Positions 1 to 33,100 of a DNA stretch of 64,000 nt are shown here, one piece after another (position 1 is the first letter of the stretch; each line of letters opens with the position of its first letter). The translations under genes and the position numbers were made by a program. The notes under the pieces are model-generated. The model was not told the origin of the DNA. It was given only the letters and a program-made list of their open reading frames with translations, and did not search any database. The DNA comes from Chrysemys picta bellii (taxonomy: Eukaryota): NCBI RefSeq assembly GCF_011386835.1, contig NC_088814.1:3968001-4032000 (forward strand). Direction: 5' to 3'.

Positions 1-433
1 AGTTCCGTTCCCAAATGGCAGGGGTGTGAGAGCGAGAGCAGGGAGTCAGGACTCCTTGGTTCTGCACTGGGCTCTGGGAGGGGATGTATGACCAGGGAAG
101 CTAGAGGGGGGTCCATGGGAGTCAGGACTCCTGGGTTCTGCGCTGGGTTCTACCCCAGCCTTGCTGCAGGGCATCGGCTCAAGTCACTTAATCTCTCTCT
201 GCCTCAGTTTGCTCATGGGCAAGATGCGTGCACTAACAGCCACCCCACAGCAGGCAGAGACTCGCTTGATTAGCAAGTGCTTCCAGTTCCTCCACCCGCC
301 TGCCGGGAAAAGAATGATGGTTCCTCTGTTACATGCAATGCCAAGGTCCCCTCCTGCCCCCAGAGGGCAGCTGGCCATGGCGTAGGGTGGGGGTGGCAGA
401 GTGAGGAAAGGGGAGCGCCAGGCAGGCTCTTAC

Positions 434-3400
434 CTCGGCCGTGCTCTCTGCTGGGCTGTCTGAGGGGCAGCTGGGCGAGGAACAACCCCTGCCAGGGAGA
501 AGGGAGACAGTTATCCTGCAGCAGGCAGCGCAGGAGGGAAGGGGGGGCTACAAGTGGGGGGGGGGATCAGAGCAGGGGGTCTCTCCAGCTTACCTTTCAG
601 GGGTCAGCAGTTTGAAGGCGTGAGGAGAGGGGAGTCCGGGGGTGGCCGGGGGGCTGTGGGGGCTGCTGGAGGCTTCTGGCCAGGGGGCACACTGGAAGCA
701 GAGGGGAGAGGATTAGGTAGTTTCCACTTCTCGAGCAGTGCTGTGCTTTGCGCACAGCACCCCCCTTAATGCAGCCACCTCTGGGGTGGAGGTGGGGACC
801 TAGTCACCATCCTCCCCACACCCACACACGCACCTCCCTGTCTGTGTTGTGGGGTTAGACAAGTGCCCACTTCCCAGCCAGGGGACGCACCTCTGGGGTT
901 CGCTATTAGGACGGAGTCCTGGTTATCTTGCTGCCCCGTTCAGAGCATGGCACCGATCCTGCCCCTTGACAAGTCAAGGCCCACCCAGCTCTGCCCTACC
1001 CAGGAACGCTGTACTGCCACACCCAAGGTACGGCTAGAAACTCAATGCCAGCAGGCTCGTGCCCCTCTCAGTTGCCCCTGGTGCTGTGAGGTTGCCCCAC
1101 GCCCGCCCCAAACCCACCTCTGCCAGCACCGTGCTCTCATAGGAAGGCTGGTATTTTTCTCGCTCCTGCGGTGACTGTTTCTCGATTTTCTCCCGGTCAG
1201 TTTTTTGTTTCCTGTCTGCTCCCTTGGGCTGAAAAATCAAATTCCCCCAATTCCAACTGGCCCCAGGAAGTGCAGACCCCATTGTATCGGCAGAGGGACC
1301 CTCCCCCAGGCTGGGCCAGCAGGATAGGTTCCTCTGAAAGTCCCCAGCATCCTCTACCTCTTTGCAGCCATCGATCTTCGCAAAGGATCTTAGTACTATT
1401 ATCCCCATTTTGGTGATGGGGAAACTGAGGCAGAGCGGGGCAGTCACCCAGCAGGTCAGGGTCAGAGCTGGGAATAAATCCCTAGCGTGCTGAGTCCCAC
1501 TCTGGGGTCTTAACCACTGGACCACACTGCCTCCCATGTGGTGGTGATGGCAAAATATAAATCTCTGAAAGGGGGTGCTAGCACCCCTCTGGTGTCTTCT
1601 AGCCCTGGAGCACCCCCCCCCCAGCTTCTCTGCTGGGCCTCCTGACAGACACCTGCACCAGCCTGCCAAGCTGAGGGGTGGAGACAGAGTTGACCCCCAA
1701 GACAGAAGTCGGGGGGAGCGTGGGAGAGCTGAGGCCTGTACTGCTCCCTGTCTTGTGGAAGCTCAGACCTGGCCGTGGGAGGCAGAGCCGGAGCAGTACC
1801 CTGCGCGCCAGTGACGGAGAGGAGGGAGCAGCGTTTAGTGGCTAGAACAGGGGACAGCGGGGCAGGACTCCAGGGTTCTCTTCTTGACTGCGAGGCCGTG
1901 GACCCAGGGGATGGCTGGGCCATCTAGTGGCTGTATCAGAGGATGGCGCGTCGGACTCCTGGGTTCCATGCCCCCGGCTTGATCCCAGGGTGCCAGGCCC
2001 CTGCCCTGGAGGACTGTTACCATGACCATCTCTGCTTTAATGCTGCTTCCGCCCGGCCTCCCCCCAGCCCAGGCAGCAGGGGACGTTAGGGGAAGCCAGA
2101 GAGGGGGCCCAGGTCCATGCCCGGGCAGGGTCAGGGCGGTACTGGCACCTTGAACACTTTGATGAGGCAGCTGGCCGAGTGCAGGTGATCCACGTGCTCG
2201 CCCTTCTCGTTGGCCTTGTAGGTGTCGATCTGGATGCGGAAGGGGACGCCCTTCTCACCCCCGTTCTTGCGCAGCGTGAATTCGGTGCTGATGCAGTGCA
2301 CCTGCCGGGAGGGAAGGGGTGAGAGTGGCCCCCTGGATCCCCCCGCCCCCCCGTCGGTGCTCTGTCCCTCCACCCTCCCCGTGCTCCACCCAGGCTCTGA
2401 CCTGCACGAAGACGGACGTCCTCTTGGTGGGGTCCCAGAGGAACTCCACCGTGTTCAGCAGGGTGGGGTGGATGTGCGGCTCCAGCACCCCGACAGACAG
2501 GGGGATGTCTGCAAGCAGGGCACAGAGGGATCAGGCAGGACCGGAGCCAGGGAGACGCGTATGCAGGGCCGCAGGTGCCCAAACACCACAGGGATGGGCA
2601 CGACGGAGGAGCCCACGTGGAACAGAAGGGGCCGAAGGATCCGGTGTCCGTGAGCCGCTGCTGGCTACCTTCTCGGAGCTCTCACCCCTCCCATGAAACC
2701 GGATCACAAAGCCCTCCTATGCCATAGCGAATTCAGCTTCCCAGCCCTGGGGGCGGGGAGCTGTTCTCCCCCTAGCGACAGCGAGGCTGAGAGAATGTCC
2801 TGCCCAAGGTCCTCAAGTGGGGGCTAGGACCCAGCAGTCCCAATGCCAGCTCTGACTACTGAACCAGGCTTCCTCCCAAAGGTGAGAAGAGGACCCTGGA
2901 GTCCGGGCTCCCTGTCCTGTGCTCGAAGCACTTTATGGGCCCAAATCTCCACAAGGGGCCCAGCTCCCAGTGTCTGCAGCGCTGAATTGAATCACAGCTC
3001 CCCAGTGCCCCCAGTTCCTTCAGCCTGGTTCCCAGCCCTCTGTTCTCATCCTCTGCTTCCTTCCCCCACCGCCTCCACATGGGCTGGTGGAGCTGGGCCA
3101 GACCCAGCAAGGGGGAGCCTGGGGTTCCCCCAGAACTCTCAGCTGCTTGCCAGGGCTGGGATGGCATTTCTGGGGTGCCAGGACCGCGATGGAGGTGGGA
3201 GGGCAAAGGGATAGGCTCATGCCCAGCCTGGCTTAGCACAGAGGCCCACCTCGGATTCCTCCTGCCCCCAGAGTCTCCTCCGTGCGGGGCCTAGCGTCTG
3301 GTCCTGGTTCCTCTCGGCTCTGACCCAGGGACCCCTGCCCTCCTTGCTTCACCCACATCGGAGGCTGCGCTGCTCTTGGGGGCTTCCTGGCCCACATGGA

Positions 3401-5489
3401 TGGGATGCTAGCTACGCCCTGGCTGGGCTGCAGATGCCAGGAGCGAGGGGCACCGTGCTCAGTGTGTGAGACAGAGATTAGGGGTGTGGACCCCGTCTCC
3501 CTTGGGCACAGCCAGGCTGCTCCCGGGGGCAGCCAGACTCACCAATGTCCAGGATGCGGTCGCCGGGGCGGTTCCACCTCCATCCCTCCAGCTGCTGGTG
3601 CTCCGTGTACTGCAGGCGCCGGTCATGAAACACCACCCTGGCCACGCTCTGCGGGAGAGAGGGGCGTCAGGCGCTGTCAGGGGCCAGGCTCCGTGGCCAG
3701 GAGCAGATGGGCGATGGAGCCACGCCAGCCGGGGAGGGAGAGGTCACGTCACGCAGCAGGGGTCGTGGCCTGAGCACGAACCGCTCAGCCCCCATTCTCT
3801 GCCCCCCCTCACCTTCAGCAGCTTCCGGCACTCGGAAAAGTCGCCCAGTTTGGGGTTGCACAGCAGCCGGATCTCGTAGGACTGGCCTGAAAGAGACTGG
3901 GTGTGAGACCCGGGGACCTGTGGGCAGGGGGGCCCCAGGAGGTGTTCTCTGCCCCCCGCTGCGGGCAGCTGGAGCACTGCTAGCCCCTGGGCTTACCCTC
4001 TCCGGCGTGGCTGGGGGGGAGCCGATGAGATCACAGCATGACCCCCCCCCGCCCAGGGCACGGCTCACCTTGGTTGAGGTAGGTGAGGGTCTCCTCGTGC
4101 TGTTTGATGGCGGGCGAGGTGGGGGTGCAGAGCACGTACTGGAAGGCCGGGCAGTGCAGCTCGGCCGACGTGGAGATGTTGTTCTGCTCCTCCTGCTTCA
4201 GGAAAGGCAGCGCCAGGGACTCCCTGCGGCAGGGCAGAGCACACGGCGGTGGGGGCGGCTTCCCCTGGGCGCTCCCCCTCCCCGCAGCCTTCCCAGCATG
4301 TGGGGGGGGGAGTATAATTCTCCTATCACACTTCCTCCCCAGCCCCTAGTGTCCTGAGCATAGGCCTGCGAGCCAGTCTCAGCCCAGGTCCTACCACTGG
4401 GACCTGGACACATCACTCCCCCTCTCCCGAGCCTCAGTTTCCCCTCAGAAGCATTAGCCTGACCCATCTGGTGGTGCTTAGCCCTGAAGGGGTGTGGGCC
4501 CCCAGGGATTACTTAGGGTTAGGAGGAAGGGGAGGGAATATTTCCTCCGCGTGGCAAGAAAATGCCCCTGACCCTGGAATCATCTCTAGGGGGTGGAAGC
4601 CCGTTGGCCCTCGGGACATCTAGACCGGACAGCACAGGAGGAAATACAAGTGGGAAGGATCCTGCCCTGACTCCGGCGAGGTGGCTGGAGCCCGGTGGGG
4701 GCTGTTCCGGCTCTAGTCCCTGCCTCCCAGGGCTGGTTGCGAGCACTTGGGAAGGCGCCAGCATTACCCCCAGGGAGCTCGTCTGCCAGCTCGTGGCTGA
4801 ACGGAGGGTAGAGGTTTATTGGGGGGGGTGCTGCCAGCCTGGCGTGCTAGCACCAGCAGCAGAGGGGGCCCCACATTCAGTCCCTGCCAAGGGCCTGCTG
4901 GCCGGGGGGGTTCAAGAGCTCCGTGGCCAGCCATGGGTGGCTCTCAGCCCCTCTGCCAATCAAACCAGCCATGTCTCCCCATGGTGTGTGTTGATCACAG
5001 GTGACACAGCTTGGGCAGACCTTGGCAATCCATCGTCATCACGAGCCAGCCAGAAAGGTCCTTCATGCTTGGGGGGACAGACCAAAACCAAATGCCTTTC
5101 TCCCGGCCAGAGCCTGTGAACTGCTTCGTCAGACACACAAAGAGAAGGGCCTGGGTCTTTCCCAAACACCCACTGAAGGGCCTCTCTCACATACAGAGGG
5201 CACTGAAATGGGACAATCCCCTCTCCTCCCCTGCCGTCCATTTCTCACACACGTACCCCTTCCGCTAGCACCGCCGCTGTAATAACAGGCCAGGATCTCC
5301 AAGCCCAAGCAAAAATTGATATTCCTGGTTTACAGAAGGGGGAAACTGAGGCACAACGGTAGCGAGGGCGGGGGAGCCATTTGGGGGATGCGAAAAAGCC
5401 ACTTACCTGAGCAGATTGCCGCCGGAGCAGGGGTACATCTCCCCTGGCCCCGGCCAGTAGTGCTCGGGCTGACTGTGCCAGAACAGCAT
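434..5489 (-). CDS. CP2/LSF-family transcription factor, TFCP2L1-like (probable fourth vertebrate paralogue); 3' part lies beyond the left edge of the window
   Basis: Coding exons on the minus strand: 5489-5407, 4223-4069, 3886-3813, 3648-3543, 2508-2402, 2301-2149, 1228-1118, 691-594, 488-434. All have GT-AG junctions and consistent phases, giving 314 open codons. Translation: [75 protein letters not shown]../[130 protein letters not shown]... This is the CP2 DNA-binding domain. The C-terminal SAM-like exons are not in the window. Confidence 0.95.
1390..1535 (-). mobile_element. MIR/CORE-SINE-like element
   Basis: Core ccccattt..gatggggaaactgaggca, followed by the reverse complement of a tRNA-derived head (..cttaaccactggaccacactgcctccc). 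Confidence 0.65.
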
Positions 5490-8400
5490 GGTGAGGGCGT
5501 GAGGCTGGACAGGAAAGTCCCCAGATCTGAGCCAGGGGCGCTGTCAGGCGGCTGTTGTCCGGAGAGGCAGCTCCTGGCACCTGTCTTTATGCTCCCAGGC
5601 TCCCCAGGTGGGTGTGTGCAGGGAGACGTGCTGAAGGATTGGCCAGCGTCCAGCTGGCTCTGAGCAGCTGGACACACCCTGGGCGGGGGGGAAGGACGGG
5701 AGCTGGAGCCGTTTCACAGCGGCTGCCTTCGTCTGTGTTACAGGAGGTGGGCGGTCATCGCTGGGGCACGAGCGGGCAAAGCGCCTCGTGCTGGAGCCAC
5801 AAGCCAGAGATGGGTTCCTGCCCCTCGCGCTTAACCAAGAGCTGCGGTCGGAGGCAGCAAGGACCCGGTGGGACGTGGCACAAACAGCAAAAACAAGCTC
5901 AGAAAACCATAGGCATGTCCACCCGTCCCCAGGGGCAGCACCTTACAGCGGGCATTGTCTAGGTAACCCCTTCCCCATGCTTTGCAGGCGCAGGAGACAG
6001 GTGAGCGCACAGCTAAGCCGTGATCTGGCATGGGTCTCTCTTTGCCGGGGGATTTGCCATGCACGGTCTGCGCTGGTGCAGGAGAACCCCAGCCATGCCA
6101 TCGTCCCCCAGGCCTTTTGCCTCCTGGGCGCTGCAGCTCGCAGTATGTCAGGTCGTGCACTCAGGCCTGGGAAAGCTGGGACAGGGAATGTGACACACGT
6201 GACGAGACGGTGACGGCCGTTTTCCTGCATCGTCTCTGCCATGTTACATGCCTGTTTAAACAGCTTTTCCCACTGGGCATCTCCGAGCTGGGAGCACATT
6301 GCAGAGTCAGCAATGAACGGTACCTAGATTGGCCGGCGGCTGAAACGGAGGGAGGCTTGGCTTTAGCAGGGAGGCAAATGGTGAGGAGCAGCGAAGCCAG
6401 GCCAGAGGCGGCAGCGGCCCGTCTGGCTGCAGAGCCCCCGGTTTGAGCAAGAACCCCGGCACCGAATCAAAAACTCCTTGATTTGCTCTGCTCGGGCGCC
6501 AAGTGTTCAGAACGCTGGGCTCTGCGACTGCCGCCAGCCTGGTAATACGGCTACGTGTACCCGTGAACATCGGGAAGGAAGACTGCAGGCTGTACTTCCA
6601 GGACGGGGGCCTCTATCCCGGGAAGCAGTGGGCTCTGCAGGGGTCAGACTAGATGATGACAATGGGCCTTTCCGCCCGTGCACACCGTCTATCCCAGCAA
6701 TGCCCACCTGGGGTGCACGCGGCTGGCGCTGTGATTTCATTGGCTTGAGGTCTCCCCAGTTCCCAGCTCTGCCCTCCCATCACCTGGGTGGGTGAAGGAT
6801 CACACCTCTTCCCCCTGAGCGGGTGTAGCTGCGCCAGCAGCTGTGTGGGCCTGGGTCTCTTCCCAGCTGCATGGAGCTTTCCGGGGCTCCCAGGAAAGGG
6901 GGACACTGAGCCGAGGGGCTGGGGGGAGCAGAGCCCAGGGCTGCCCCGGGGAGCGGAGGGGGGCGGGGAAGAGCTGGTGGTTTACAGCAAACACTTTGCT
7001 GGGGTTTGTTGTGAAAACAGGCAGAGCCCAGAGCCAAGGGCCCTTTGTTTTGCTGAGCTGGGGAAATTCTTGTCTTCCCTGTTTACTGTAGCGGGGGCCC
7101 AGGGTGTGGGGCAGCAGTGGGGCTGGGACAGGGGAGCCTGTGGCCTAGGGGGCGGGTGGGAAGCAGGGGGTTGGGGGGAACACTAGGAGAATAGACGGTG
7201 GCTGCTGCTCCTTCCTGTGTTGGCCTAAATTCGGCCTCGCTTGGTGCAAGGGCAGGGCTCCGGGCACGGGAAGCACCGTGGGGCTGAGACGGGAGCCTGT
7301 GCTTCCCCCCTGCGTCTGTGCAGAGCCCCGAGCCAGGACGGAGGCCCCGCATCCCCCACCCCGGTGCTGCTGGAGACCGTTTCAGCCACGGGTGCTGCCC
7401 CGGCCACCTGCTGCAATGACCCCCCCTGAGCTGCGCCAGCCCCGCAGAAGAGCTGGGTGGGGGCGCACTGTGCCTCCTACAGGGGGGGAGCCCAGAGCCA
7501 GGGGAGCCAAATCTGTGCCTGTGGGGGACACCCCCTGGGCCAAGGCTTTTGAGCCGTGCAGCCCATTGGCACCAACTAATGGGCAACAGGGCACTGATGA
7601 CCCCCCCTCCCCCTCCTTCTGATTTCATCCCGGTGATCGGTTCCCTCCCGTTGGGCCTAGGCTGGCATCAGAGCAGCTCCCCCCCGGTCCGTCCGTTGTC
7701 CCCCCTCCGACACTCCCGTGTGGTGTTTACGCACAAACATGGGGGCGTGCTGATGGCTGGCTGGGTGCACGGAGTCCGCTCCCCCGCCCGTGTTTACACA
7801 GCACACAGCCCACGCCGTAACACGCTGTCCCAGAAACCCGGAGAGACGTGTGTGTGTTTGGTGTCAAAATAGACGGCGCTCACTGGTAGGGGTGTGGGGG
7901 AGCCCTTCAGGACCTCCCCGGGGGTTGGTGTCCAGGGGTCAGAGGGACTTTTGGGGGACTTCAATCCGTTGGTCTGATCCAGGGGCCCAGGGAGGTGGGG
8001 GGAGGGATACCCAGCTAGTTGGCCCCATACTGATCCACTGCAGAGCGGCTGGGGGGCTGGAGGGGGAAGCACCTCCCATTGCAGTGAGCAGAGGCTGCCG
8101 CTGTGCGGAGGAACCAGCTCCCCGAAGACGAGGACGAGAGCCTAAGTCCTGCTGCGGGCGCAAGTCGTGGTCCTCCCTCTGAGACCCCTGGCGTGAGCTA
8201 CACATGGAGAGGGAGAGGGGCTCAGTACAACCCAGTCTCCCCAAATTTCCCGGGGGCAGGAGCCCAGCAGCCCCCTCCCTGCTGGAGGGCTCAGACCCCC
8301 CCCCCAGCCGAGCTGGAGCTGAGCCGTTCAGACCCAGCACCAGGCTCCCCCCAACGGCTGGGCTGGTCCCCAATCCCAGGCTGTGGCCCATCCCGCGCCG

Positions 8401-10954
8401 GCCGGGCCCATGAGCAGGGCTTGGGGCAGGTGGATCCCACTGGAAGTGACTGTGGAGGGCAGAGGTGGGGCAGGATGGTGGGGCACTGTAGCGCATTGAC
8501 CGACATGGATTTCCATGGACCAAGCAAGCGACGGGTCCCTTGGGGGGGTCAGGTCCCGGCAGCTCAGAGACACCCTGGGGTCCCAGCTCTCAGCCCATTG
8601 GGGGGCTGGTGGGCAGGGGGTGTCTCTGCAGCACACAAGGAGCCTCCTCAGCCCCTAAGGAGCCGTCTGCAGGGGGGGGGCTGCTCCCCCCCCGAGACGT
8701 CCGGGGGCATTAGGCTGGCACCAGACGGCTGCAGAATCAGGACTGAGGGTGAAGAACCAGCCCAGGGCTCCTGGCTCAGTGGCAGGATTGAACCCCGGAG
8801 TCCAGGAGTTGGCGGGGGGGGGGGAAGGGGAACCCTATAAGGTCCCTTCGGCGCCCCCCTGAGGTAGCGACCAGGAGAGGGTCACCCATGCATCTCTCTG
8901 CTCCTCATTCCCTGTAGCCAACCCCCCACCCCTGCCACCCAGCCCTTTCCTAGGCCCAGTGGGGGGGGGTCCCCAGTTCCCAGCTCTGCCCCCCATCCCC
9001 TCCCCCTCCGCTCTGGCTCCCCTGCCCCACCTCTGTCTCGCCTTCCAGAGCTCCCTCCCCACAGCTCTCCTTTGCCAGACCCCACCTGGGGCGGGAGGTG
9101 TCTCTCCCCCCCCCCCCCGCCCCAGCCTGGCTCTGTCCACTTCAAACATCTCCCCTCCCCCGCATCCCACCTCTAAGCCTCCCTATCCCTGGTCCCCCCT
9201 TTCCAGGCCAGGGCCCAGCAGGGATTACAGGCCCAGGGGGGGAGGGGGGGAACCGGCCCGCCCGCGGTGTTTGCTGTACACAAGCCCTGTTTCCAGTAAA
9301 CACCAGCCCTTGCAATGATCCAGGAGCCGGTGGGGCTGGGGGGGGGCTCTCCTGGCTCCCTGCATCCTTTGGGGGGGATCTACAAAGCTCAGATCCTGCC
9401 CCCCCACTCCCCCGAAAGAGGCTGTGGCCTGCACACTCATCTCCCCCAATGCAGCCAAACTGAAAGCACGGAGCACCCCAACCTGTGAGCGCCCCCCCCC
9501 CCCCAGATCACAGCTGGGAGTCGCTGGGGAGGAGAGCCAGGCAGGGTTTGGGGGGCAGCGCGGAGCCAGGCAGGAGGCTCCACCAAGAACCTGGAGCCCA
9601 AAAGCTGCGATTTCTTTGTGTGCAGAGCGTCCCCTGCAGGAGAGAAGGGACACGGCGGCTGCTCTGAATACACAAGGGGCTTCTTCAGCCAGGCTGCTGG
9701 ACGCAGACAGACCCAGTGGTTCCCTCTGACTCCCAGCCTGGGCACGGGGCCCCCCTCCCTGCCCCAGCTGTGCCAGTCCAGCTGGACTGGACTCTGAGCT
9801 CAGCCCCTGGGAGCTGGATCTCTGTGCCCTATGGGTGGGGGCGCTCCCACGGGCTACTCTTGGGGCTGCAGGGGCTCCCACCCCACTAGTCCTGGCCTGC
9901 TGAGAGGGACGCATCAGGCCAGCACGTCTCCAGCGTCTGGTAGCTAAGCTGCGCCCGCCCCGGTGCCAGCCATGCCCCCAGGCAGCCCCACACCTGCAGA
10001 GCCAGGGGTCCCGACGAGAGTGGGGCCCGTCCCAGGTACACTCTCCCTGCCTGCGATTGCTCTCCAGGGCCAGGCCCTGCCCCACTCCCCGCTCCGCTCG
10101 CTGACCCATGCTTCTCCAGCAGCCCTCCTAGGAACAGCCTGAAGCTGGGGCCTTTCGCAGGGGTCACCCCTGCTCTCCCCAGGCTGCGGGGGGGGGGGGG
10201 CGGGGGGCTGACGTCTGGAGCGACGCAGAGTTCAGGGCCAGAGGAGAGCGTTCGAGAATCTAGCCTGAGCCGGCAGAACGCAGGCGAAAGACGCTCGCCC
10301 AGTGACCAGCACCGAGCCCAGTTTGGCTGACGCCAGAGTCTGGGAGTGGAGCCCCATGACTGGGCTTTCCCTCTCCCCTGCTTTCGGTCTCTGTTCTTGC
10401 TGAGCCGGGGGGAGGGGGGGCGGGGGGAGCTGTTTTTAATGGGAAAAATAATTAACCTGAAACCCTGGCGGAGTTCCCTTTGCTTTTCAGTGCCTCCTGC
10501 TGTCTGCGGTTCCCTCAAGGACGTGGGAATAATTAAGCATGGACAGGGGGGGAGGAGGACCAGCTCCAAGGAGCCCTGTCCGACCCTCCCAAGGGACGGG
10601 GGCTTGGTGTCTACATGAGAAATGCAGGGCCTGTCGCCCCGGAGGACTCTGTGGGTGACTGGGGAGCTGGCAGGGGTAGGGTAATAGGCAGCATGGCCCA
10701 GTGGGCAGGAGACCTGGGCTCTGTTCCCGGCGTGACCTCTGACCCAGGGCAAGCCTGCTCATCGCTCTCCTGCCTGGGGGCAGGGAATCGCCTCAGGTGC
10801 CCCCCCTTGCTCTCGACTGGGGCTGGTAGGTGCTACTGGAACACAAACAACGCAGCCTGGGGGGCGGGGACGGGGTTTTCCTGGGACTGGTGAAGACTCT
10901 CTGGGTTTTGCTGCCAACCATTTTACTCAAACACACACAGGGTCCCGATTCCCA

Positions 10955-11077
10955 CCAGCAGGGGGCAGCACTACCCAGCTCCCCACTCTCTCTCTCACAC
11001 ACACACAGCAGGGGGCAGTGCACACACACACACCCCCACACACACGCACAGAGCCAATTCCCTCCAGCAGGGGGCAG
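10955..11077 (+). promoter_or_regulatory. Three tandem CTCF-type motifs
   Basis: CCAGCAGGGGGCAG at 10955-10968 and 11064-11077 and ACAGCAGGGGGCAG at 11005-11018, all in the same orientation. Consensus used: CCASYAGRKGGCRS. Confidence 0.6.
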
Positions 11078-12544
11078 CGCTGTTTGCTCACACACACCCT
11101 CCCACAGGAAAACTGCTTGCTAGGGCGATTCACCTCCCCTCGCCCCTGGGTGGCGTTGCTGGAACCGCAGCCCTCTGCCACCCCAGGACGCCTCCAGCAA
11201 CAGCCAGGAGCAGCCACTCGATCGTCCTGATCTTGCGGGCGGGCGGGCGGGGGACAAACAGGAAAACACCTTTGGCCAAACTTCTTGCATCCTCCGTCAT
11301 CCGTTAAAGGGCGATAAGAAAGGAGGCGCCCTGAGTTGTGCCCCCCCAAGCTGGAGAATGCGCCATGGGACCCCTCCTGGACTGGCTGTGGGGGCTGGGC
11401 TTGAAGGGATGATTGGGCCCTGCTGGGATGTTGCTCGTCTTTTACCCTTTGCCTCCCACCCCTGGGCTCCTCGGCGGGAGCCGAACCCACCCCCTGCCCC
11501 AGGCAGTAGCACTGGGCTGTCCCCTGGCCCTGGCTCGCCGGGCTCTGTCCTCAGGCCGGGCTGGCCCCAGCTGCGCGCTCAGGAATGGCCGGGTGGAGCT
11601 GAGCTCGGAGCTTCATCGACAGCAGGGAAGCACAAGCATGCCCGGCTCTAGGAGCGTCGGCCCCGACACAGAGCGGGGAGCCCGAGGCCTCCCCTGAAGG
11701 GCAGGTCCGTGCGCACGCCGGCTCCAGGGCCGGGCGTGGGGCTTTGCTGGGGCCAGCACAGCAGAGAGGCTGGTCGAGCCCAGCACGGACCAGGGCGCCA
11801 GGACTTGGTGGCCGTATTGTGCTAGCCTATTTCACCCCCAGTTCCACGGACGGGCGCCAGGCCCCAAAACACACTGGCGCCCCCCAGTAGCAAGTACCAG
11901 AGCGACACCCTTGGGGTTTCTATTTCCCACCGCGCAGGGCCAGCGGCAGGGCGAGCTCCCCCACCCATGGGCATCACCTGTGACTCCGGCGGCCCTCCTA
12001 GAGCTGGGAGTCAGTCTCCATGGGCGATCCAGCCTTGGGCCCCTCTGCTGCTGGCATCACCAAGCCTGGAGGAGCCAGGCTGGGAGCTGCCGTGTGTGGT
12101 GGGCTCTGAAGATGGAAAACCGCTAAGCTGGGGCGGGGGGGGGGGAGGTACTTACAGTACTAGGACTAGCTATGGGCAGAGAGAAACCGGAGCGGGGGTT
12201 GTTGGGGCAGAGAAATGGGGACACCTGCTGATGGGGAGGCAACTGGGCGGACAGAGGGCAGTTCATTTCGCAGCTCTTAGCCAGTCCCACCTAGACACTG
12301 GCGCTAAGCGGTGCCCCGCACATCCTGGCCCTGATTTCTGTCCGAAGTCTCAAGAGCTGGGCTTGGCCACTTCCAGACTGAGCAGAATTCAAGGAGAGCC
12401 GTGCTGGCCGCAGGAACCTCCCCCCCCCATCCCCCACTCCACAGCCCGGGTCGCCTTTTCCAAGGGCTTCCAGTGCTGATGGGCCTGGGGGGTGACTGGA
12501 ATGGCCCACCCCAGCTCGTTCCCCGTGGCAGAGCTGGAGCAGGC

Positions 12545-13015
12545 TGGGAGTGCTGGGCGGTCTCTGGCTTGTTATTGTAGGGTCTCCCGGGAGTGCTGGG
12601 TCTGGGCGGTCTCTGGCTTGTTATTGTAGGGTCTCCCGGGAGTGCTGGGTCTGGGTGGTCTCTGGCTTGTTATTGTAGGGTCTCTCGGGAGTGCTGGGGC
12701 TGGGCGGTCTGGCTTGTTATTGTAGGGTCTCCCGGGAGTGCTGGGTCTGGGCGGTCTCTGGCTTGTTATTGTAGGGTCTCCCGGGAGTGCTGGGTCTGGG
12801 TGGTCTGGCTTGTTATTGTAGGGTCTCCCGGGAGTGCTGGGTCTGGGCGGTCTGGCTTGTTATTGTAGGGTCTCACAGGAGTGCTGGGTCTGGGCGGTCT
12901 GGCTTGTTATTGTAGGGTCTCTCGGGAGTGCTGGGTCTGGGCGGTCTGGCTTGTTATTGTAGGGTCTCTCGGGAGTGCTGGGTGGTCTGGCTTGTTATTG
13001 TAGGGTCTCGCAGGA
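12545..13015. repeat. Minisatellite, 47-49-bp unit, about 10 copies
   Basis: Unit ctggcttgttattgtagggtctcccgggagtgctgggtctgggcggt(ct); copies start at 12564, 12613, 12662, 12709, 12758, 12805, 12852 and onward. Confidence 0.95.
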
Positions 13016-24100: not shown

Positions 24101-27100
24101 AGCCCCCTGACTCCTCCAGGCTGCCAATTAGCTCAAACAATAGCTGATCCGTCCTGGGATCTCTGCCCTGATTGTCTTTCCCTTTTAAGATCTTGATCTC
24201 CCCAGGGAGGTGGAGATCCCAGCTGGGGGGGGGGGGGCTGCTGCAGAGGGGGCAGATGAAAGCAGGGTGTGGCAAGAAGCCGGAATAACCAGCCTGCCCT
24301 GGCCTTGGGCCTGCTGACCCCTGTGGGGCGGGCGGGGGAGATTTCTGTAGCTTATCCCACTGCAGCGAAAGGGGGCTGGATCTGCCAAATAAACTTTCCT
24401 GCCACTCGAATTCATTCTCCATTTAAAAACCTGTCTGTTGGCTTATAAAGATCAGACCAACTGCCAGGCAGGGTCCCCCGCTCCTTTCCCTGACCCACTT
24501 CGGGGCAGACACGGCTCTGCACGTAGGCATCTCGGGCAGCCTTCCGGCGCCTCGGAGCAGCCTGGCAGCGTGTTTGGGGAATCCACGGGCCCGATCTCCT
24601 GCCCCCCTGCACCGCCTGCGGCCAGAGCACAGCGCAGACCCAAAGGCTGCCAGGCTGAGTTGGCAGGTCCTTTTGCCGCTCGCTCGGTGCTGGTGCGGGG
24701 AGCGTGAGGCCATGTGAGGACGTGGGGCAGCGGGGCCCCCAGGTCATGGTGGGGAGTCAGGCTCAGGGCAGTGGGAATTGGGCCCTGAAATCAGGAAGGC
24801 CGGTGACGAGGGGGGATTTAAATGAGAACCCCCAGCGGTGCACTGCGGATTCAGCAGCGTTTAGCTGGTGCCCTCTGCCTGTGCCCCGTGCTCTGCCTGG
24901 CCCTGTGCTCTGCAGAACGACGGGCACCCCTTGGCGAAATCCCTGCCCATGTCCTCCCCCCCTCCTGGGAGCGGGGTCTGCAGCTCGATGGATGTGACCG
25001 TCTCCCCTCGCAGTAACGGCCTTCTTGGCGTGGTGGGTCTGTGGTCTGAGGCTCCTGTGACCAGTCCCCCCGCGTGGGTATGGTGCCCGGCTGCCGAGCG
25101 TTCCAGGATCCCTGGAGGGTGATGCCTGCAAATTCCCCCAGCAGCCCACGGAGCAGTTCTCTGCGGGGCGGGGAGCAGGCTCTGTACCCCGGGGGGAGCG
25201 GGGAAATGGGAGAGGGAGCGAGCGCCTAATGGGGGGGATAGAGGGAAGGCAATATTGCCAGAGCCCTGCCAGGGGAGGGGGCAGTGCAGTGGTATTGGGA
25301 TCCTGGCAGGATGGGGGCTGGAGGGGAAGAGGCGGCGACTGACGCTAGGGAGGGGCAGGGCCAGGATCGGCCTCTCGGGGGACCCCCTGGTGTCTCGGCC
25401 TCAGGATCCCCGGGGGCTTTCTCTGGTGCTGGTTCTGACCCAGAACAAACCTGGCAGCAACTGGAGACTCTACACTCAAACCTCCAGCGGCTGGAGACTC
25501 TACACTCCCTCTTTCTCCCCCGTTAAAATTCAGGGGCCTGATCCTTCCCCTCTCCCTTCCCCACTGCTGCCAGCTGCCCCTGCCCTGCAGTGGGTGAATC
25601 TGCCCCAGGATGGACTGATTAACGCTCTCTGATCCGGGCGGTAAATGTCACGATGCAAAATCCGGTGCCCTGGTTCTGAGAGCTGGCACAGGGTGAGGCA
25701 CGGAGGGGCATCCACCCCCTCCCCTGAGCTGAGGTAGCATGCAAGGAGGGTGCCCTGGTTCACGCTCCTCTGGAGGAACTTGGGGGGGGGGGGGAGAGAG
25801 AATGACATGGTGCAGCAAGTCACATCAGTCTCCATGACCAAGAAGGGAGCCAATCCGCAAAGCTGGGAGCAGGAGCTGGGTTTTGAACATCTCCCGACGT
25901 TTGGCTCTGGGGTGTTTAGTCCATTCTGGGGTTGGACGCCCGGCCGTAGAGTTTGGATCTAGAATGTCCCAAAGTTTGGATCCAGGGCAGGGGGTCTGAT
26001 CCCGGCCTCGTCTGGGCCAGGGCGGGGGGCTGGCTGGGGCCGGGTCCCCACCGTGCATCCAATGCCCCGGAAATGAGCCGAGCCGCCTGGAGACAATCGG
26101 CCCCAGAGAGCTGCCATTAAGGATTTTCAGGGTTAACAGCTATTCCCCTGCCTCCTCCCCACCCCCCCCGGCTAGCCACGAATCCGGGTAATATCTCGAC
26201 ATCATGCAGCACTGGCTGGCTTGGGGCAGCTCCCTCTCCCCCTCTGCTGGCTGCCCCAGCAACTACAGCCAACTGCTACTTCCTCCCAGCCCAATGGGTT
26301 CCTCTTTCAGCTCAAGGGGCCACTGGTTCGAGTCCCGCTGGCGCCCGGCTGTCTGAAGAACCGTGGGGTGGGTTGGGTGACGCCAGGTCTCTCGGAGGAG
26401 GGGCGTTCCCCTCACACCGGTGTACTGATGCGTCCGGGCTCATTGGCCCCCTCTAGTGGCAGGTTTGTGTGTCTGCTCCTCCCTCCAGCTCCCGCAGTAA
26501 CGCTTCAGGCACCAAGGTGTAGGGGTCAGCCCCTGCAAGGGGCAGGTGCCAGGTGGGGGGGGCAGTTACGTTTCCGGGGGGGGGGAGAGGTTTTGGGAAG
26601 GCGGTTGAGGGGGCAGCGCTCTGGGCTCATCCCGTCTCTGAACTGCGGCACCTGCTGCCTTTTCAGCGGCTTTGTGCAGCGGCATCTAGGGCAGGTTAAA
26701 AATAGAGCTCGGGGTAGGGCCGGGTGTCAGAGAATATCGGGCTTTCTAGCTCAGGGGAGCGGCGGAGGGATAAAAGCGAGAGCTGTGGATGGCTCCCGGC
26801 CCTTCCCTCCCTGCCACGGCCTCGTGAATGTCTCTCGCATCCTCAGATGGCGGCTTTGAATCTGGCTTTGCCAGCTCTTTTTCTAAGCATCCAATTAAAG
26901 GGGCATGGGCGGGCGAGGGAGGGATCATCTTTGGGGGGGGGGGTCTGCGTCCTCACTGTCACTTACTGTCCTCCCCGAGACACCCACCTTCCCAGCCTGG
27001 CACCCATGAGAGCAGCCCAGCACTCAGGAGCAACCCTACCATAAACAAAGCAGGGAATTGCGCCCAGCCCTCGACAGCAACCCTACAATAACAACCCACC

Positions 27101-30100
27101 ATGCGACCCTGCCACAGGGTGCCCCCCGCAATAGCAAACCAGCGCCAGCAGCCCTCGGGCTCGCCGGAGACTTAACCCCAACCCCCAAAGCACAGGGGGG
27201 ATCAGTTTAGTACCACTGAAAGAGTGAAATGGGCCCGTCACTTGAGCATCATGTAGGGGAGTGATTGGCTAACCCCCCCCCCCGACACACACACACACAC
27301 ATACACACACACACACCTCCTCTCTCAACCCTGTCCCCCTGCAGCTCTGCTGATGCCCCTCAATCCCGACCTGCAGGGGAAGGGGGGGGCTTTGGAAAGG
27401 CGGGGGCAGACCCTGACTGGTGAGCTGCTGTCCCCCTTCCATCTGGGTGGAAATTGTCCTTTCGTCAGCGCCGGCTCTTTAGAGATGCAGCCCCGGAGCT
27501 TGTGGGGCTGCTCTAAGAGGGGGCACAGGGTGGCGGGATGGGGGGGGATCTAGGATCCAGGCTGGGAGAGATGCTCTCTGATGGAGGCTGAGGGGGGGGG
27601 TGGAGTAGGTGCCATGGGCAGGGGGCAGAATCCTGCGTGGGTGCCCATGACCGGCTGAGCCCGACTCCAGCGGGGTCTGTTCACACCAGCTGGGGATCCA
27701 GTCCATGGCCCCAAAGGGGAGCAGGAAGAGGGGGTACACGAGAGTCGGGATGGGGGGGCATCAGCAGAGCCTGGGGCTGGGGGGTGGGGCAGGAGGCATT
27801 CACCCCTCCCCTTCCCAGGCTGGCATCTCCCCCCGCTCCAGTCTAATTAAGATCTCTTGACGAGTCCCCGTGCTCGTGGTTAATCACCTTTTGTTCCCCG
27901 AGGAGGGACCGGGATGCCAGCCAAGCGTCATGCCATTATCCTGCCTGAGAGCATTCTCCCGGGCACCCTGCCCGCTGCTGCCAACGCCCCCCCCCCCCCG
28001 AGTTGGGACCAGAGCCGTCTGGAGATGGTGACGGAGCAGACCCCCGGGCCTGCCCACCCACCTCCCGTGGGCTGGCAGTGCCCTCTGACTCAGCTGGCAC
28101 ACGGGCCACCTGCCCACCCCACAGCTGCTTTGCCCCCCGGGGAGGGGGAGGGAGCACAGAGCTCCAGCTAGCAGAGAGGGAGGGAGATGGGGAGAGTGGG
28201 GGGGTCACTGCACCAGAAAGAGAGACCCCCCATTTCAGCCAAGAGCTGCCCCCTGTCTTGTGCCCTTGGGGAGCTCCTGATCTGTCCCCAAAGCATATTG
28301 CCCTGGGGGGAGGGGTGCCCCTGCCCCCCCCCAGGATGTACCCCAGGGCTGAGGGAGCTGGGAGGGGGGCTGGGAGTGCTGGGTGACCGGGGACGGGGGG
28401 GCTCTGTATGTTCCCCCCACGCCTTCCATTTCCCCCTTCCCACCCATGCCAGGGGCTCTGTTTGCCCCCCTCTCCCAATCTTCTCCCCTCCCCTGGCAGG
28501 GGCCCTTTGTGCGTGCCCCCAATCCCTCCCCCCATTTGCCCCATTATGATTTGGGGGAGGGGTAAATCATTCAGGGTGTCAGCTCTTGCTAGACTCTTGG
28601 GAGGATGAGCCGAGCTGAGGTGCTTGTGTCTGTGCTCGTCAGGCGGCAGGAGCTCCATGTGTCCCCCACGGTCTCCCTTTGGGTTTTCTTCTGTCCCACC
28701 CAAAATCAACAGGGGTTTGGCCACAGATGCCTGGAACATTGCCTGCGATTTTGGAATTGACCAGATGCAGCGGTCAAGAACTAGTGTGTGGCAGACGGAG
28801 AAATGCCGTCAAGTTGAGTGCATGGCCCTGCAAACTCGGCCAGTTGTTCCCATCTGCGTGCTGGGTTCTGTGCCTCCCACCATGGCCCTCCCGGGAGCTG
28901 TGCCAGGATGAGGTCCGGGGCATGTCGGCTGTAACTCTGGTCCATTCTCAAGGGTGCTTTGCAAAGCTCCTCACTCGTCTCATGGATGGGGAAACTGAGG
29001 CACTGAGTGGGGGACGGGACTTGCTCCAGATCCCCAGCAAAACAGCCACGGAGCTGGGACGTGAACCCAGGAGTCCTGCTGCCCTTTGCCTTGCTTTGAC
29101 CAGGTGACGCAGCCCCTTATGTGGCTCTGGTGGTCATGGGAGGTGAGAGGGGACCCTCCCTCGGAGCTCCCTGGCACAGCTGAGATTCGGTGAGCCGGGC
29201 GGGGGACTCTGGAATAGCCCAGAAATCGTGGCTGTGCCAGGTTAGCCTGGCGGCTCCCCGTCCCCCTGGGCATCCTGTGATCCTCGCGCCTTCCTGTCCC
29301 AAAGCCTGGCCCCGCAGCTCCTTTGCAGTGGTGGTCACCAGCCTCTCCCTTGTTCCCAGTGCGATTCCCCCACCGAGCCGAGCGCCCTGCCCTGCAGCCC
29401 CACGCTGGCCAGGGCGGGCAGAGAACAGCATGGGCCTGCCTCTGGGGGGTGACGGGTGCTGGGACCCCGTGCCCCGAAGATCCCTGTCGCAGCACCCACG
29501 CGCCCAGCCTTGGAGCTCCAGCACCTCCTCTGCAGAGCCCCAGGGTCCCTGGGTGTGAGCCGGCGTGGCCGAGGCAGACGTGGGCTCTGCCAAGCCCATG
29601 CCAGGGACTGTGCCAGATCTTGAATAAATGAAGGACAAGAGACCGAGTCAGTGGCGGGATGGATCTGGGTGCCAGGCTCATTGGAAGCCAGTCTGAAACC
29701 TCAGCCCCAGCGAGGGATTATTTCGTGTTGCCCTTGCTTCAGCCGCTGGGGCTGTGTCTGGCTTGTTATCCTGTGGCAGCAGGCTAGGAAAGGGCCTGTC
29801 TATTGTATTGAGCTGGCAGTTGTGTCTGAGCCCCCAGTAACCCCCACCCGACAGGATCAGCACTGCTCAACTGTGTGTCACGAGCCCTGTACTGGCAGCA
29901 GCTCATGGGGATTCCCCCTGAGCTCAAATGGCGCAGGGCTCGGCTCATGGAGGGGTCTCCCCCGACACAGCACGCAGCAAGGCAACAGCATGACCCAGAT
30001 CTGTGCCGACAGTGACGTGATGCCCCATGTGGCGCCTGCCTTGGGGTGTGGCCGGGGGTTCAAAGCACTTACCAGACACAGGTGAGGTTAGCCGGCGAAG

Positions 30101-33100
30101 TCTGTGCTGTCACACAGATGGGGGGGGACAGTCCCGCAGGGCTAGAGCGTGTGCTCTTCACGCTGGCTGTTCCTTGGGCGGGAGTCCTGACTCCCAGTCT
30201 TGCGTCTCCCCCCTCGCTGGCTGCTTGCACCCCAGATCCCGTGATGCTGCGGGTGAGCGGGTGATCTCCACACCGGGTCCCTCGATCCCCATTCAGACAG
30301 GGCCCCGGGGAGCGAGGGCTCAGCCAGAATCGGAACAGCTGGATTCCCACCAGGCTTCCAGGCGATTAGCTCCAGAGCTGCGGCCTCGGCCGGCTGCCGG
30401 CAGCCCCGGGCTCTGTGTGTGTGTCAGGTCCTGTCTGGGGCTAATCGCCTTGTGCTTGGTGTCTCTCCTGGTTTATTATCCCGTGGGTTGGGGACCCACG
30501 TGCAGCCCGGAGCGGCCTCCGGGGCAGACGTGCTGGGGAGAGACAGGAGACTCGGGGCCTGTGTCGCTGTGGGAAGAGCAGTCACTGGGCTGGGGAGATC
30601 CTGCACCCCAAGGGATGTGGGGGGGGGGAGGAGTGAGGCTGTCATAGTGGGGTTGGGAAAAGGCATATGGGAAAGGAGGGAGCCATGAATATGGGTGTGG
30701 CTAAAGGGTGGAGGTGTGGCCATGGGAAGTGGGTGTGGCTAAAGGGTGGAGGTGTGGCCATGGGAGGTGGGTGTGGCTAAGGGGAGGAGGTGGAGCTATG
30801 AGTGATAATATTAGTGCCCCAAAGGGTTTTAACCCTTGGTTGAGATGAAAAAGGGAGGAGCCAGTGGAAGCTATGGGGGTGGAGCTATGGGATGTGGGGG
30901 TGGAGCTATGGGTGGGGGTGGGGCTATCGGTGGGATTGCCTTATCCCTGGCAGGTACAGCCGGTCTCCTAAAGGTTCAGAGCTGGATCCTGGCTCTGCAC
31001 CTGCCTTGGCTCCCAGGGAGGCGAGAGCCCCAGCCGGGTTGGGAAATGCGTGGGGCTGAGTCCCTGGCCTGCTCTGGGGTGCAGGAAGCGCTGAGATCCC
31101 GGCTGGCCCGTGGGCAGATGCTGGGGCCGGGGGTCCCTGCAGCCCTACGTAGATCAGCTGTACCTCACGAGCAGGGGGCTGAGGGGGACGGGGTGGGGTA
31201 AGGGATGGGAACTGAGGGGTGCAAGCCGGGGAGGCAGGACCTGCTAACCCATTCCTCTGTGGAGGGGGGAAGGGAGAGGCCTTTGCAGCGGAGGGAGGGC
31301 TGGCGCCTCCCCAACATCACCACGTGGGGTTTCTTTTGCCCCCCAGCCTTCCTCCCCCTGCCCTCGTGCTGGCTCTGTAGGGGAGGGGGATTAACAGATT
31401 CAGCAAAAACATCTTCAAACCCACATTACGGCTTTTGCCGCCGGAGGCTGGTGGGGGGGATTCCGGCCCGGAGAGCAGGATTCAGAGCCATGGCTGGAGG
31501 TTGGTGCCCTCCCATGCCTCCCCCCCCCCCCCCGGGGTTACTGGATCAGTAGCTCAAAGCGGGGGGGGGGGATGACTCTGCGCAGCCCTGGTGGGCTCCA
31601 TGGCCCGGTGACTAAGGCTGGCACATCTCTCCCCCTCCCCCCCGCCTATGTGCCTCAGCACAAGGACCCCCTCCCCCCCCCAGCATGAGAGGCGAGCGTG
31701 GCCTCCATGGCCCATTTACTCCCCAGCCAACAAGGGGGGCAACTGGCCCCGCTGTGGTGCTGGGGGTGCCTGGGATGGGACAGAGACACCCCCTGACCCT
31801 GCGGTTCCCCCCTTCTGTCAGATGGGCTGGGACCCGCATGGGAGGAGGCTCCATGACCCATTTCCAGCACCCCCCAACTGCTCCAGGCCATTCACACCCC
31901 CTCTTGAGTGTTTACCAGCTGGGCAGCGACGCCCCTGGGGCCCGTTCCCGGGGGACCCTGGCAGGACGCAGCCCCGGGAGGGGGGTCGCAGAGAGAGGGA
32001 GTTGGGCTGAGAGGCTGGGCTCAGGGTGGAGGTGGGGTAGGGGGCAGCAGTCAGAGCCCCCGTGCACGGTGCTGCCCCCGCCTCGTGACGCTCCTTGGGT
32101 CTCTGCTCTGCTTCCCCCCCAGATGCAGAGGCTCAAGCGCTCGCTGTCCCTCAAGACCATCCTGCGTAGCAAGAGCGTGGAGAACTTCTTCCTGCGATCC
32201 AACAGCGAGCTCAAACTCCCCTGCGAGGTGCTTCTGAGCCCCCCGACGCCCTTGCCGCCCCCGTCCCCCCCGCCGATGCCCACCGAGGCCGTCCTGCCCC
32301 GGGCCGAGCACTCGCCCATCGCCTGCCACCGGGCCCTGGCGCCCCTCAAGCCCATGCGAACGCACAGCTTTCAGGAGCACGTCTTCAAGAAGCACAGCCC
32401 ATGTGAGATGTGCCACCAGCTCATCGTAGGTGGGTGCCGCGGGGACCCCGTTCCCAGGGCAGGCTGCTACTCCGGCCTCGGCCAATGCCCCCGATCCCTG
32501 CCCAGAGCCCCCTGCTTTCCCAGCCTGGGCACCTGCATCCCCATCCAGCTCCGCCTCTGCCCCTTGATCCCAGCCCACAGCCCCCTGCTTTCCAGCCTGG
32601 GCTCCCCCATCCCCATCCAGATCTGCTGATGCCCCTCAATCCTGCCCTGAAGCCCCCCTGCTATTCCAGCTCTGGGCTTCATTCCTCACCCTCCTTGAGC
32701 TTGCAGAGAGGTTCCCCTCTGGGTGGGGCTCTTTCTGACACCGCCCCTCCACACCCGCCCCGCAATGTACACAGGACTCCGATCCTGCCCTTTCCTTCCC
32801 GGGTCTCACCCCAAGGTCTGGCTCTGCTCCGAATCCTGGTTGCTTTCGTGCCTCTCCCACAGTGAGACCCCCATGGGGGATTTTCTACATCCTTCCCCTG
32901 CCCCATCCCCACCCCCGGGGCTGGGGCCTCTCTCACCCACCCCCTGTGCGTGCTTGGTGTGTTGCAGGCAATTCGAAGCAAGGCCTGCGGTGTAAAACGT
33001 GCAAGGTTAGCGTGCACCTGTGGTGCTCGGAGGAGGTCTCGCACCAGCAGTGTCCCGGCAAGACGGTAAGCGCCCGCCGAGCTGGTCCCAGGAGTGGGGG

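Follow-up and report, generated by a model that had tools for sequence, protein, structure and literature searches.

A probable fourth CP2/LSF paralogue of jawed vertebrates, located between FBXL20 and STAC2 in the turtle Chrysemys picta bellii

Introduction

How many CP2/LSF-type transcription factor genes do jawed vertebrates possess? According to current descriptions, the CP2 subfamily consists of TFCP2, TFCP2L1 and UBP1 only, with three genes in both human and mouse (PMC5829564, PMC6213935), and a survey of paralogons names the same six Grh/CP2 genes. A paper on the evolution of LSF and GRH proteins omits the vertebrate paralogues (PMC2873413). The question is raised by a stretch of DNA from the turtle Chrysemys picta bellii, namely C24:3968001-4032000 (contig NC_088814.1) of a 2.37-Gb genome; these 64,000 nucleotides, with a GC content of ~62%, are referred to below as the window. 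At its left-hand end lies a minus-strand gene, here called N4, which a first-pass annotation made from the sequence alone regarded as a probable fourth CP2/LSF paralogue. The analysis described here indicates that N4 is very probably just that: an intact and constrained paralogue which predates the divergence of sharks, most likely stems from the vertebrate whole-genome duplications, has been widely kept, and has decayed at least in chimpanzee.

A literature search, incomplete in its coverage, yielded no fourth CP2 member and nothing relevant on TFCP2L1 in connection with STAC2 or FBXL20; N4 is apparently undescribed in the literature searched. The name 'TFCP2L2' was considered and rejected, as it is an old alias from GRHL or pluripotency papers and denotes a different gene. 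To our knowledge, functional work on the CP2 subfamily comes entirely from human and mouse.

Gene structure and domain content

The gene model was rebuilt from the raw sequence. Within the window, N4 has nine coding exons with a total of 942 nt, or 314 codons (Table 1); all internal boundaries are AG/GT, the phases are compatible, and there are zero stops and zero frameshifts. The first-pass annotation had placed an intact nine-exon CP2-domain gene between positions 434 and 5489. The former position coincides with the end of exon 9 and the latter with the ATG, and all peptides that it quoted, including KGADRK, are present; its description was accurate to the base. The gene extends past the left window edge. 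In 30 kb fetched on that side, and with turtle orthologues as a guide, six more intact exons were located 0.46-4.78 kb leftward, giving a full model of 15 coding exons that encode 481 amino acids, again with AG/GT boundaries throughout and no stops. The closest database protein is P0177 from Chrysemys picta bellii, with 98.5% identity.

Comparison with the Gopherus orthologue gives dS 0.118, dN 0.019 and dN/dS 0.158, and each of the 15 exons has kept its length and splice sites; N4 is under purifying selection. A pseudogene or retrocopy is ruled out by the 15 spliced exons together with the dN/dS of 0.16. Copies of interspersed repeats are found at positions 23-140 (last in-window intron) and 1375-1537 (intron 6); dozens of copies with 70-80% identity occur genome-wide, including tandem runs at C22:14.495 Mb and C20:0.19 Mb.

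A Pfam scan of the whole genome matched the CP2 domain (PF04516) in three in-window exons of N4. When exons were scanned directly, with a cut-off of 25 bits, exons 6 and 2 gave matches (scores in Table 1). Scores for the full-length protein were taken from the near-identical P0177 and from P0175 rather than from the window translation: CP2 with 186 bits, SAM_3 (PF18016) with 61-66 bits and GRHL1_C (PF25416) with 55-58 bits. The SAM_3 domain occupies residues 316-373 of these proteins and is encoded by N4 exons 10-11, just left of the window; the C-terminal dimerisation domain GRHL1_C is encoded by exons 13-15. Exon 6 also matches the solved structure of the TFCP2 DNA-binding domain (8y7v) with E = 2.5e-23.

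It is a SAM-like domain that distinguishes LSF-type from GRH-type proteins (PMC2873413). With CP2, SAM-like and C-terminal dimerisation domains all present, the predicted protein is a member of the CP2/LSF subfamily of the Grainyhead/CP2 family. GRHL1-3 resemble it in having a CP2-type, p53-like DNA-binding domain, a C-terminal dimerisation domain and a conserved Arg (R427 of GRHL1, corresponding to the R in KGADRK), but they belong to the other subfamily and have no SAM-like domain (PMC2873413).

Four CP2-type loci in one genome

The whole-genome scan found seven CP2-domain loci in the turtle, three of the GRHL type and four of the CP2 type (Table 1). Searches by tblastn with named references identified the CP2-type locus on C11 as TFCP2L1, that on C22 as TFCP2 and that on C2 as UBP1, with open exons in all of them; the three further loci that the first-pass annotation expected in addition to N4 are all in place. 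The TFCP2L1 locus extends over C11:9.531-9.568 Mb, and the protein reconstructed from it clusters with macaw TFCP2L1. N4 is 59-62% identical to each of the three turtle paralogues (61.5% to TFCP2L1), the models of UBP1 and TFCP2 being partial, with 350 and 427 residues. Identity to the paralogues amounts to 73-78% in the DNA-binding domain and 38-54% in the linker. Identity to N4 orthologues is 96% for Gopherus, 91% for crocodile, 74% for opossum, and 68% for both cat and lungfish.

Each paralogue shares some features with N4. TFCP2L1 (also LBP-9 or CRTR-1) has the same layout of CP2, SAM_3 and GRHL1_C domains, a length of ~480 amino acids and the short N-terminus MLFWH.QPEHY. It differs in its location on C11 rather than C24, in its DNA-binding domain (78% identity), and in having H in RKHGGEKG and Q in SASCQIK, where N4 has N or K and, in amniotes, L. 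UBP1 (LBP-1a) belongs to the same domain family and likewise lies between a tail-to-tail FBXL gene and a STAC gene; unlike N4, it has an N-terminal extension beginning MAW and ~540 amino acids, forms a separate clade, and has 73% identity in the DNA-binding domain. TFCP2 (LSF, CP2c or LBP-1c), the subfamily prototype, has STAC3 and a Hox9 gene on its chromosome, C22; on C24, N4 is similarly linked to STAC2 and another Hox9 gene. TFCP2 differs in forming its own clade, keeping Q234 and evolving very slowly.

Phylogeny

Relatives were gathered by a library-wide HMMER search with exon 6 and by word-indexed searches, which together gave hundreds of CP2 proteins; N4 proteins were picked by shared signatures including RK[N/K]GGEKG. 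Two trees were calculated, a quick maximum-likelihood tree with 98 rows and a careful 66-row tree with LG+C20+F+G4 and posterior mean site frequencies (support given as ultrafast bootstrap/SH-like approximate likelihood ratio test). Approximately unbiased (AU) tests used a 33-row set with LG+G4.

The 66-row tree contains four jawed-vertebrate clades: TFCP2 (100/99), UBP1 (87/97), TFCP2L1 (100/99) and N4 (100/99). The N4 clade comprises shark, skate, lungfish, amphibian, sauropsid, monotreme, marsupial and many placental sequences. Within it, the window gene and its Gopherus counterpart are sisters (100/99), and the other three turtle loci fall into the other three clades. Forcing the window gene into the TFCP2L1 clade is rejected (difference in log-likelihood 290, AU p = 1.6e-5). 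The identification of N4 as a fourth paralogue is thus upheld by a clade of its own, by separate paralogue loci and by this rejection; N4 is neither the only TFCP2L1 of the genome, there being a second locus on C11, nor part of the TFCP2L1 clade.

The N4 sequences of Leucoraja, Heptranchias and Stegostoma are sister to those of lungfish and tetrapods within the clade. The TFCP2L1 clade has sharks of its own, and Heptranchias has one gene in each of the two. An origin of bony-vertebrate N4 from TFCP2L1 after the shark split is rejected (AU p = 0.0075). Because cartilaginous fishes are present in both clades and a later origin is rejected, the trees place the N4 duplication before the split between cartilaginous and bony vertebrates. 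Among possible pairings, N4 with TFCP2L1 as sisters fits best, with a difference in log-likelihood of 0.09 from the free tree. The lamprey genes show no one-to-one correspondence with the jawed-vertebrate clades.

Within N4, mammals form a subclade (100/99). The bird proteins are very rich in Gly, Ala, Pro and Arg and have long branches; in both trees they cluster with mammals and not with crocodile and turtle. Given that these rows do not pass the composition test, this grouping is probably a long-branch or composition artefact.

Distribution and names

The set of proteins defined by the signatures includes birds, crocodilians, turtles, squamates, tuatara, platypus, marsupials, frogs, salamanders, caecilians and lungfish. 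Among placentals, N4 is found in cat, walrus, bears, bats, whales, rhinoceros, donkey, camelids, bovids, elephant, tenrec, golden mole, mole, tree shrew, ring-tailed lemur and colugo. Full-length mammalian proteins (~480 amino acids with the three Pfam domains) come from platypus, at least five marsupials, and placentals of all four superorders. Many species with N4 also have a bona fide TFCP2L1. No full-length N4 from rodents or anthropoids is among the matches listed, which does not by itself establish absence.

In the chimpanzee, two proteins named as TFCP2L1 isoforms X1 and X2, XP_054527576 (249 amino acids) and XP_016786270 (177 amino acids), are truncated remnants of N4 (P0442, P0443, P0120). 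Compared with lemur N4, these models are missing exons 3-4 as well as the beginning of exon 6, and past KPKGA they are out of frame. Among mammals, truncation was seen in the chimpanzee models only. As judged from these models, decay of N4 has affected the chimpanzee lineage at least, and the gene is retained in lemur, tree shrew and colugo. Numerous ENA and JGI metagenome contigs also carry the open reading frame of the chimpanzee remnant. The N4 protein of the reindeer, Rangifer tarandus (P0106), is unusually divergent: it reads KPKRADRK, and a portion of its DNA-binding domain is replaced, which might be due to decay or to a poor gene model.

NCBI names nearly all N4 proteins 'transcription factor CP2-like protein 1', as the first-pass annotation foresaw in suggesting that automated pipelines would label the gene TFCP2L1-like; a few are called 'UBP1' or 'UBP1-like'. 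Names do not match clades elsewhere in the family either. Salamander N4 is named 'UBP1' or 'UBP1-like', and shark orthologues of UBP1 are named 'UBP1-like' (proteins with mismatched names: P0196, P0198, P0387-P0400); the alligator 'alpha-globin transcription factor CP2' (P0372) clusters with TFCP2L1. Database names are unreliable in the CP2 family.

Synteny and paralogon

The neighbourhood of N4 repeats that of UBP1. FBXL20 lies on the plus strand to the left of N4, tail-to-tail and at a distance of ~8.9 kb, an arrangement that the first-pass annotation had predicted by analogy with FBXL2 and UBP1; its leucine-rich repeat exons match the FBXL2 structure 6o60 with E = 7e-44. To the right of N4 follows STAC2. 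On C2, the order is FBXL2 (plus strand, 87.693 Mb), UBP1 (minus strand, 87.71-87.75 Mb) and STAC (plus strand, 89.54 Mb), and on C22 STAC3 (13.8 Mb) lies near TFCP2 (14.86 Mb). The arrangement is also found in other species. In the bald eagle, the order is RPL19 - STAC2 - N4 - FBXL20, with STAC2 and N4 1.4 kb apart; in Gopherus and the blue whale, the next gene after N4 lies tail-to-tail with it and has the same FBXL20 C-terminus. For the cat protein P0206, a search for encoding contigs gave no record.

The turtle genome has four Hox9 genes, on C24 (2.1 Mb from N4), on C22, on C11, and on an unplaced scaffold (C934:22778-23323), the last of which is probably the HOXA cluster. The three chromosomes with a Hox9 gene carry N4, TFCP2 and TFCP2L1, respectively; the fourth Hox9 gene is unplaced relative to UBP1 on C2. 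The proposed location of N4 on a HOXB-type paralogon is supported by the Hox9 gene on C24. The synteny is consistent with the copying, as a block, of an ancestral FBXL-CP2-STAC unit located on the Hox paralogon, and the reading of N4 as the fourth ohnologue is favoured because FBXL20-N4-STAC2 mirrors FBXL2-UBP1-STAC, with Hox9 on C24.

N4 and STAC2 had been described as head-to-head. Their orientation is indeed divergent, but 15.7 kb separate the start codons, with no CpG island in between (CpG observed/expected 0.27-0.62 in every 1-kb bin). In Gopherus, there is no called gene within 10 kb upstream of N4. RPL19, though it flanks STAC2 in the bald eagle, is absent from the turtle window. In STAC2 itself, Pfam matches to STAC2_u1 are located at C24:4001530-4001619 and 4002143-4002265 (33.5-34.3 kb in the window); an undivided C1 domain pattern gave no match, because introns split the C1 domain. 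A run of 140 N (an assembly gap or masked sequence) is present at 40453-40592, in the intron that separates the final STAC2 exon (41.06 kb) from the one near 38.7 kb.

Table 1. Coordinates of N4, its neighbours and the CP2-domain loci of the turtle genome. Positions are those of the window; negative values lie to the left of it, and C numbers denote other coordinates in the assembly.
Feature	Position	Strand	Remarks
N4 exon 1	5407..5489	-	ATG at 5489; donor GT at 5406-5405; 100% match to residues 1-28 of Chrysemys and Gopherus orthologues
N4 exon 2	4069..4223	-	Start of CP2 DNA-binding domain; AG/GT; Pfam CP2 26.6 bits directly, also matched in genome scan
N4 exon 3	3813..3886	-	AG/GT; length and splice sites identical in Gopherus
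N4 exon 4	3543..3648	-	AG/GT; CP2 match in genome scan; 35 amino acids, no family in direct Pfam scan alone
N4 exon 5	2402..2508	-	AG/GT; 100% identity to Chrysemys P0177
N4 exon 6	2149..2301	-	Pfam CP2 52 bits; clade-specific H to N and amniote Q to L changes
N4 exon 7	1118..1228	-	Arg equivalent to GRHL1 R427 retained (role of Arg: PMC5829564)
N4 exon 8	594..691	-	Pro/Ser-rich linker; AG/GT
N4 exon 9	434..488	-	Final exon within window
N4 exons 10-15	-460..-553, -1218..-1308, -2725..-2807, -3406..-3551, -4128..-4179, -4744..-4781	-	Stop TAG; left of window
FBXL20 last exon	-13772..-13647	+	C-terminus ...HAYFAPVTPPPSVGGSRQRFCRCCIIL then stop
Intergenic, N4 ATG to STAC2 ATG	5490..21213	.	15.7 kb
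STAC2	21214..41097	+	Exon 1 (MTELTEKEN...) at 21214; stop ends at 41097; motif matches
Other STAC2 exons	near 32.15-32.45, 32.98, 33.53-33.62, 34.14-34.27, 36.06, 38.72, 41.06 kb	+	Motif matches
GRHL-type loci	C2:253.8 Mb, C3:33.4 Mb, C23:12.0 Mb		Strong matches in Pfam CP2 scan
CP2-type loci	C11:9.54 Mb, C2:87.7 Mb, C22:14.86 Mb, N4 on C24		Pfam CP2 scan

Rate of evolution and residues at the DNA interface

Judged by tree distances, N4 evolves 3-20 times faster than its paralogues. For N4 versus TFCP2L1, the distances are 0.53 and 0.064 between turtle and opossum, 0.60 and 0.028 between turtle and bird, and 1.13 and 0.34 between turtle and shark. TFCP2 has a turtle-marsupial distance of 0.067, against 0.53 for N4.

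Two replacements in exon 6 are diagnostic. RKHGGEKG is changed to RKNGGEKG across the whole of N4, from sharks on, and to RKKGGEKG in placentals. SASCQIK is changed to SASCL[IV]K in every amniote N4 examined (among proteins P0163-P0267), the window gene included, and salamander and shark N4 keep the Q. The latter position corresponds to Q234 of LSF/TFCP2. An engineered LSF with Q234L/K236E does not bind DNA and is dominant negative; both residues are near the DNA interface, and R427 of GRHL1 is a key base-contact Arg (PMC5829564). N4 retains the equivalents of K236 and, in KGADRK, of R427. The first-pass annotation had argued from the intact KGADRK region that the protein should still bind DNA; that region is indeed intact, but N4 has Leu where LSF has Q234.

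Origin and function: alternative explanations

In the favoured scenario, an ancestral FBXL-CP2-STAC block on a Hox-bearing proto-chromosome would have been copied by the vertebrate whole-genome duplications. Its domain content predicts that N4, in the manner of its paralogues, binds specific DNA sequences as an oligomer, and it may hetero-oligomerise with TFCP2, UBP1 and TFCP2L1. The H to N change in the whole clade and the Q to L change in all amniotes sampled lie beside the DNA interface and suggest altered affinity or specificity, with which the fast evolution concurs; as a weaker hint, the absence of a CpG island would fit restricted expression. We infer from the sequence that N4 is an oligomeric CP2-type DNA-binding factor with modified DNA contacts.

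Several points weigh against this account. The AU test does not reject the pairings of N4 with UBP1 or with TFCP2, and in the 66-row tree the deep nodes that would order the four clades and place the lamprey genes collapse, so that the tree alone cannot show the topology expected of two rounds of duplication (2R). No ray-finned fish or coelacanth N4 is among the matches listed, which points to losses or reflects the scope of those matches. Both DNA binding and oligomerisation are predicted from domains, and the Leu at the Q234 position could weaken the former. Finally, a search of sequencing runs over N4 gave no evidence of expression. Small runs guessed to be RNA contained 10-41% of the words of window positions 1-6000 and, for intron 4 (2540-3520) alone, 32-46%; their coverage is therefore not exon-biased and says nothing for or against expression of N4.

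How, then, do other origins compare? The short N-terminus without the MAW extension, the name given by NCBI and the best-fitting sister pairing might all be taken to mean that N4 is simply the TFCP2L1 of this genome, translocated, misassembled or recently duplicated. Such a view is practically untenable: the full TFCP2L1 on C11 clusters with that of birds and differs from N4 at more than a third of residues, many species have both genes, and placement of N4 inside TFCP2L1 is rejected by the AU test. It is also highly improbable that a fourth ohnologue was kept in the reptile or sauropsid lineage and lost in mammals, as the first-pass annotation had supposed. The three CP2-subfamily genes described for human and mouse (PMC5829564, PMC6213935) and the truncated chimpanzee models agree with such a loss, but full-length orthologues in platypus, marsupials and placentals, the well-supported mammalian subclade, and the blue whale gene beside FBXL20 refute it for mammals in general. 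The collapse of the deep nodes and the behaviour of the lamprey genes leave room for an N4 that is just as ancient, predating the split of sharks and bony vertebrates, but arose by a regional or segmental duplication instead of 1R/2R. We regard this as quite improbable, given that the flanking genes (FBXL2/FBXL20 and STAC/STAC2/STAC3) were duplicated alongside in the same order and orientation, and that three of the four CP2 genes lie on Hox9-bearing chromosomes, the pattern expected of 2R paralogons.

Accepting N4 as the fourth paralogue, its mode of action in amniotes could still differ from that of its relatives. With Leu at the Q234 equivalent in all amniote proteins examined (and Gln in sharks and salamanders), with the failure of LSF Q234L/K236E to bind DNA (PMC5829564), and with its oligomerisation domains retained, amniote N4 might have no DNA binding of its own and pair with TFCP2, UBP1 or TFCP2L1 via the SAM and C-terminal domains, naturally modulating them or acting as a dominant negative. 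This, too, is rather unlikely. Of the two engineered substitutions, N4 has just one, K236 being kept; the DNA-binding domain is the best-conserved part of N4, with KGADRK and its key Arg intact; and purifying selection on this domain argues for its continued use. A factor that binds DNA through modified contacts remains the preferred description.

Implications for the CP2 family

What is new is a fourth conserved CP2 paralogue across jawed vertebrates, where reviews and structural papers count three. The gene fills the missing fourth copy of the Hox-linked FBXL-CP2-STAC paralogon block. Orthology tables, expression atlases and the interpretation of knock-outs in non-model vertebrates (chicken, Xenopus, dog, cattle, whales) may merge two genes. 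A bolder proposal, possible but doubtful, is that N4 is an unrecognised seventh Grainyhead/CP2 gene of jawed vertebrates that is functional in most mammals, livestock and companion animals included, and has decayed in hominids, and in which the amniote Leu alters DNA binding so as to make it a natural modulator of TFCP2/UBP1/TFCP2L1 complexes. Decay in hominids, if true, would explain why the gene has never been studied. With its fast evolution and a fixed change at a residue known from dominant-negative LSF, N4 constitutes a natural experiment on DNA recognition by CP2 proteins, and its decay in chimpanzee, as opposed to its retention in lemur, tree shrew and colugo, represents a datable gene loss.

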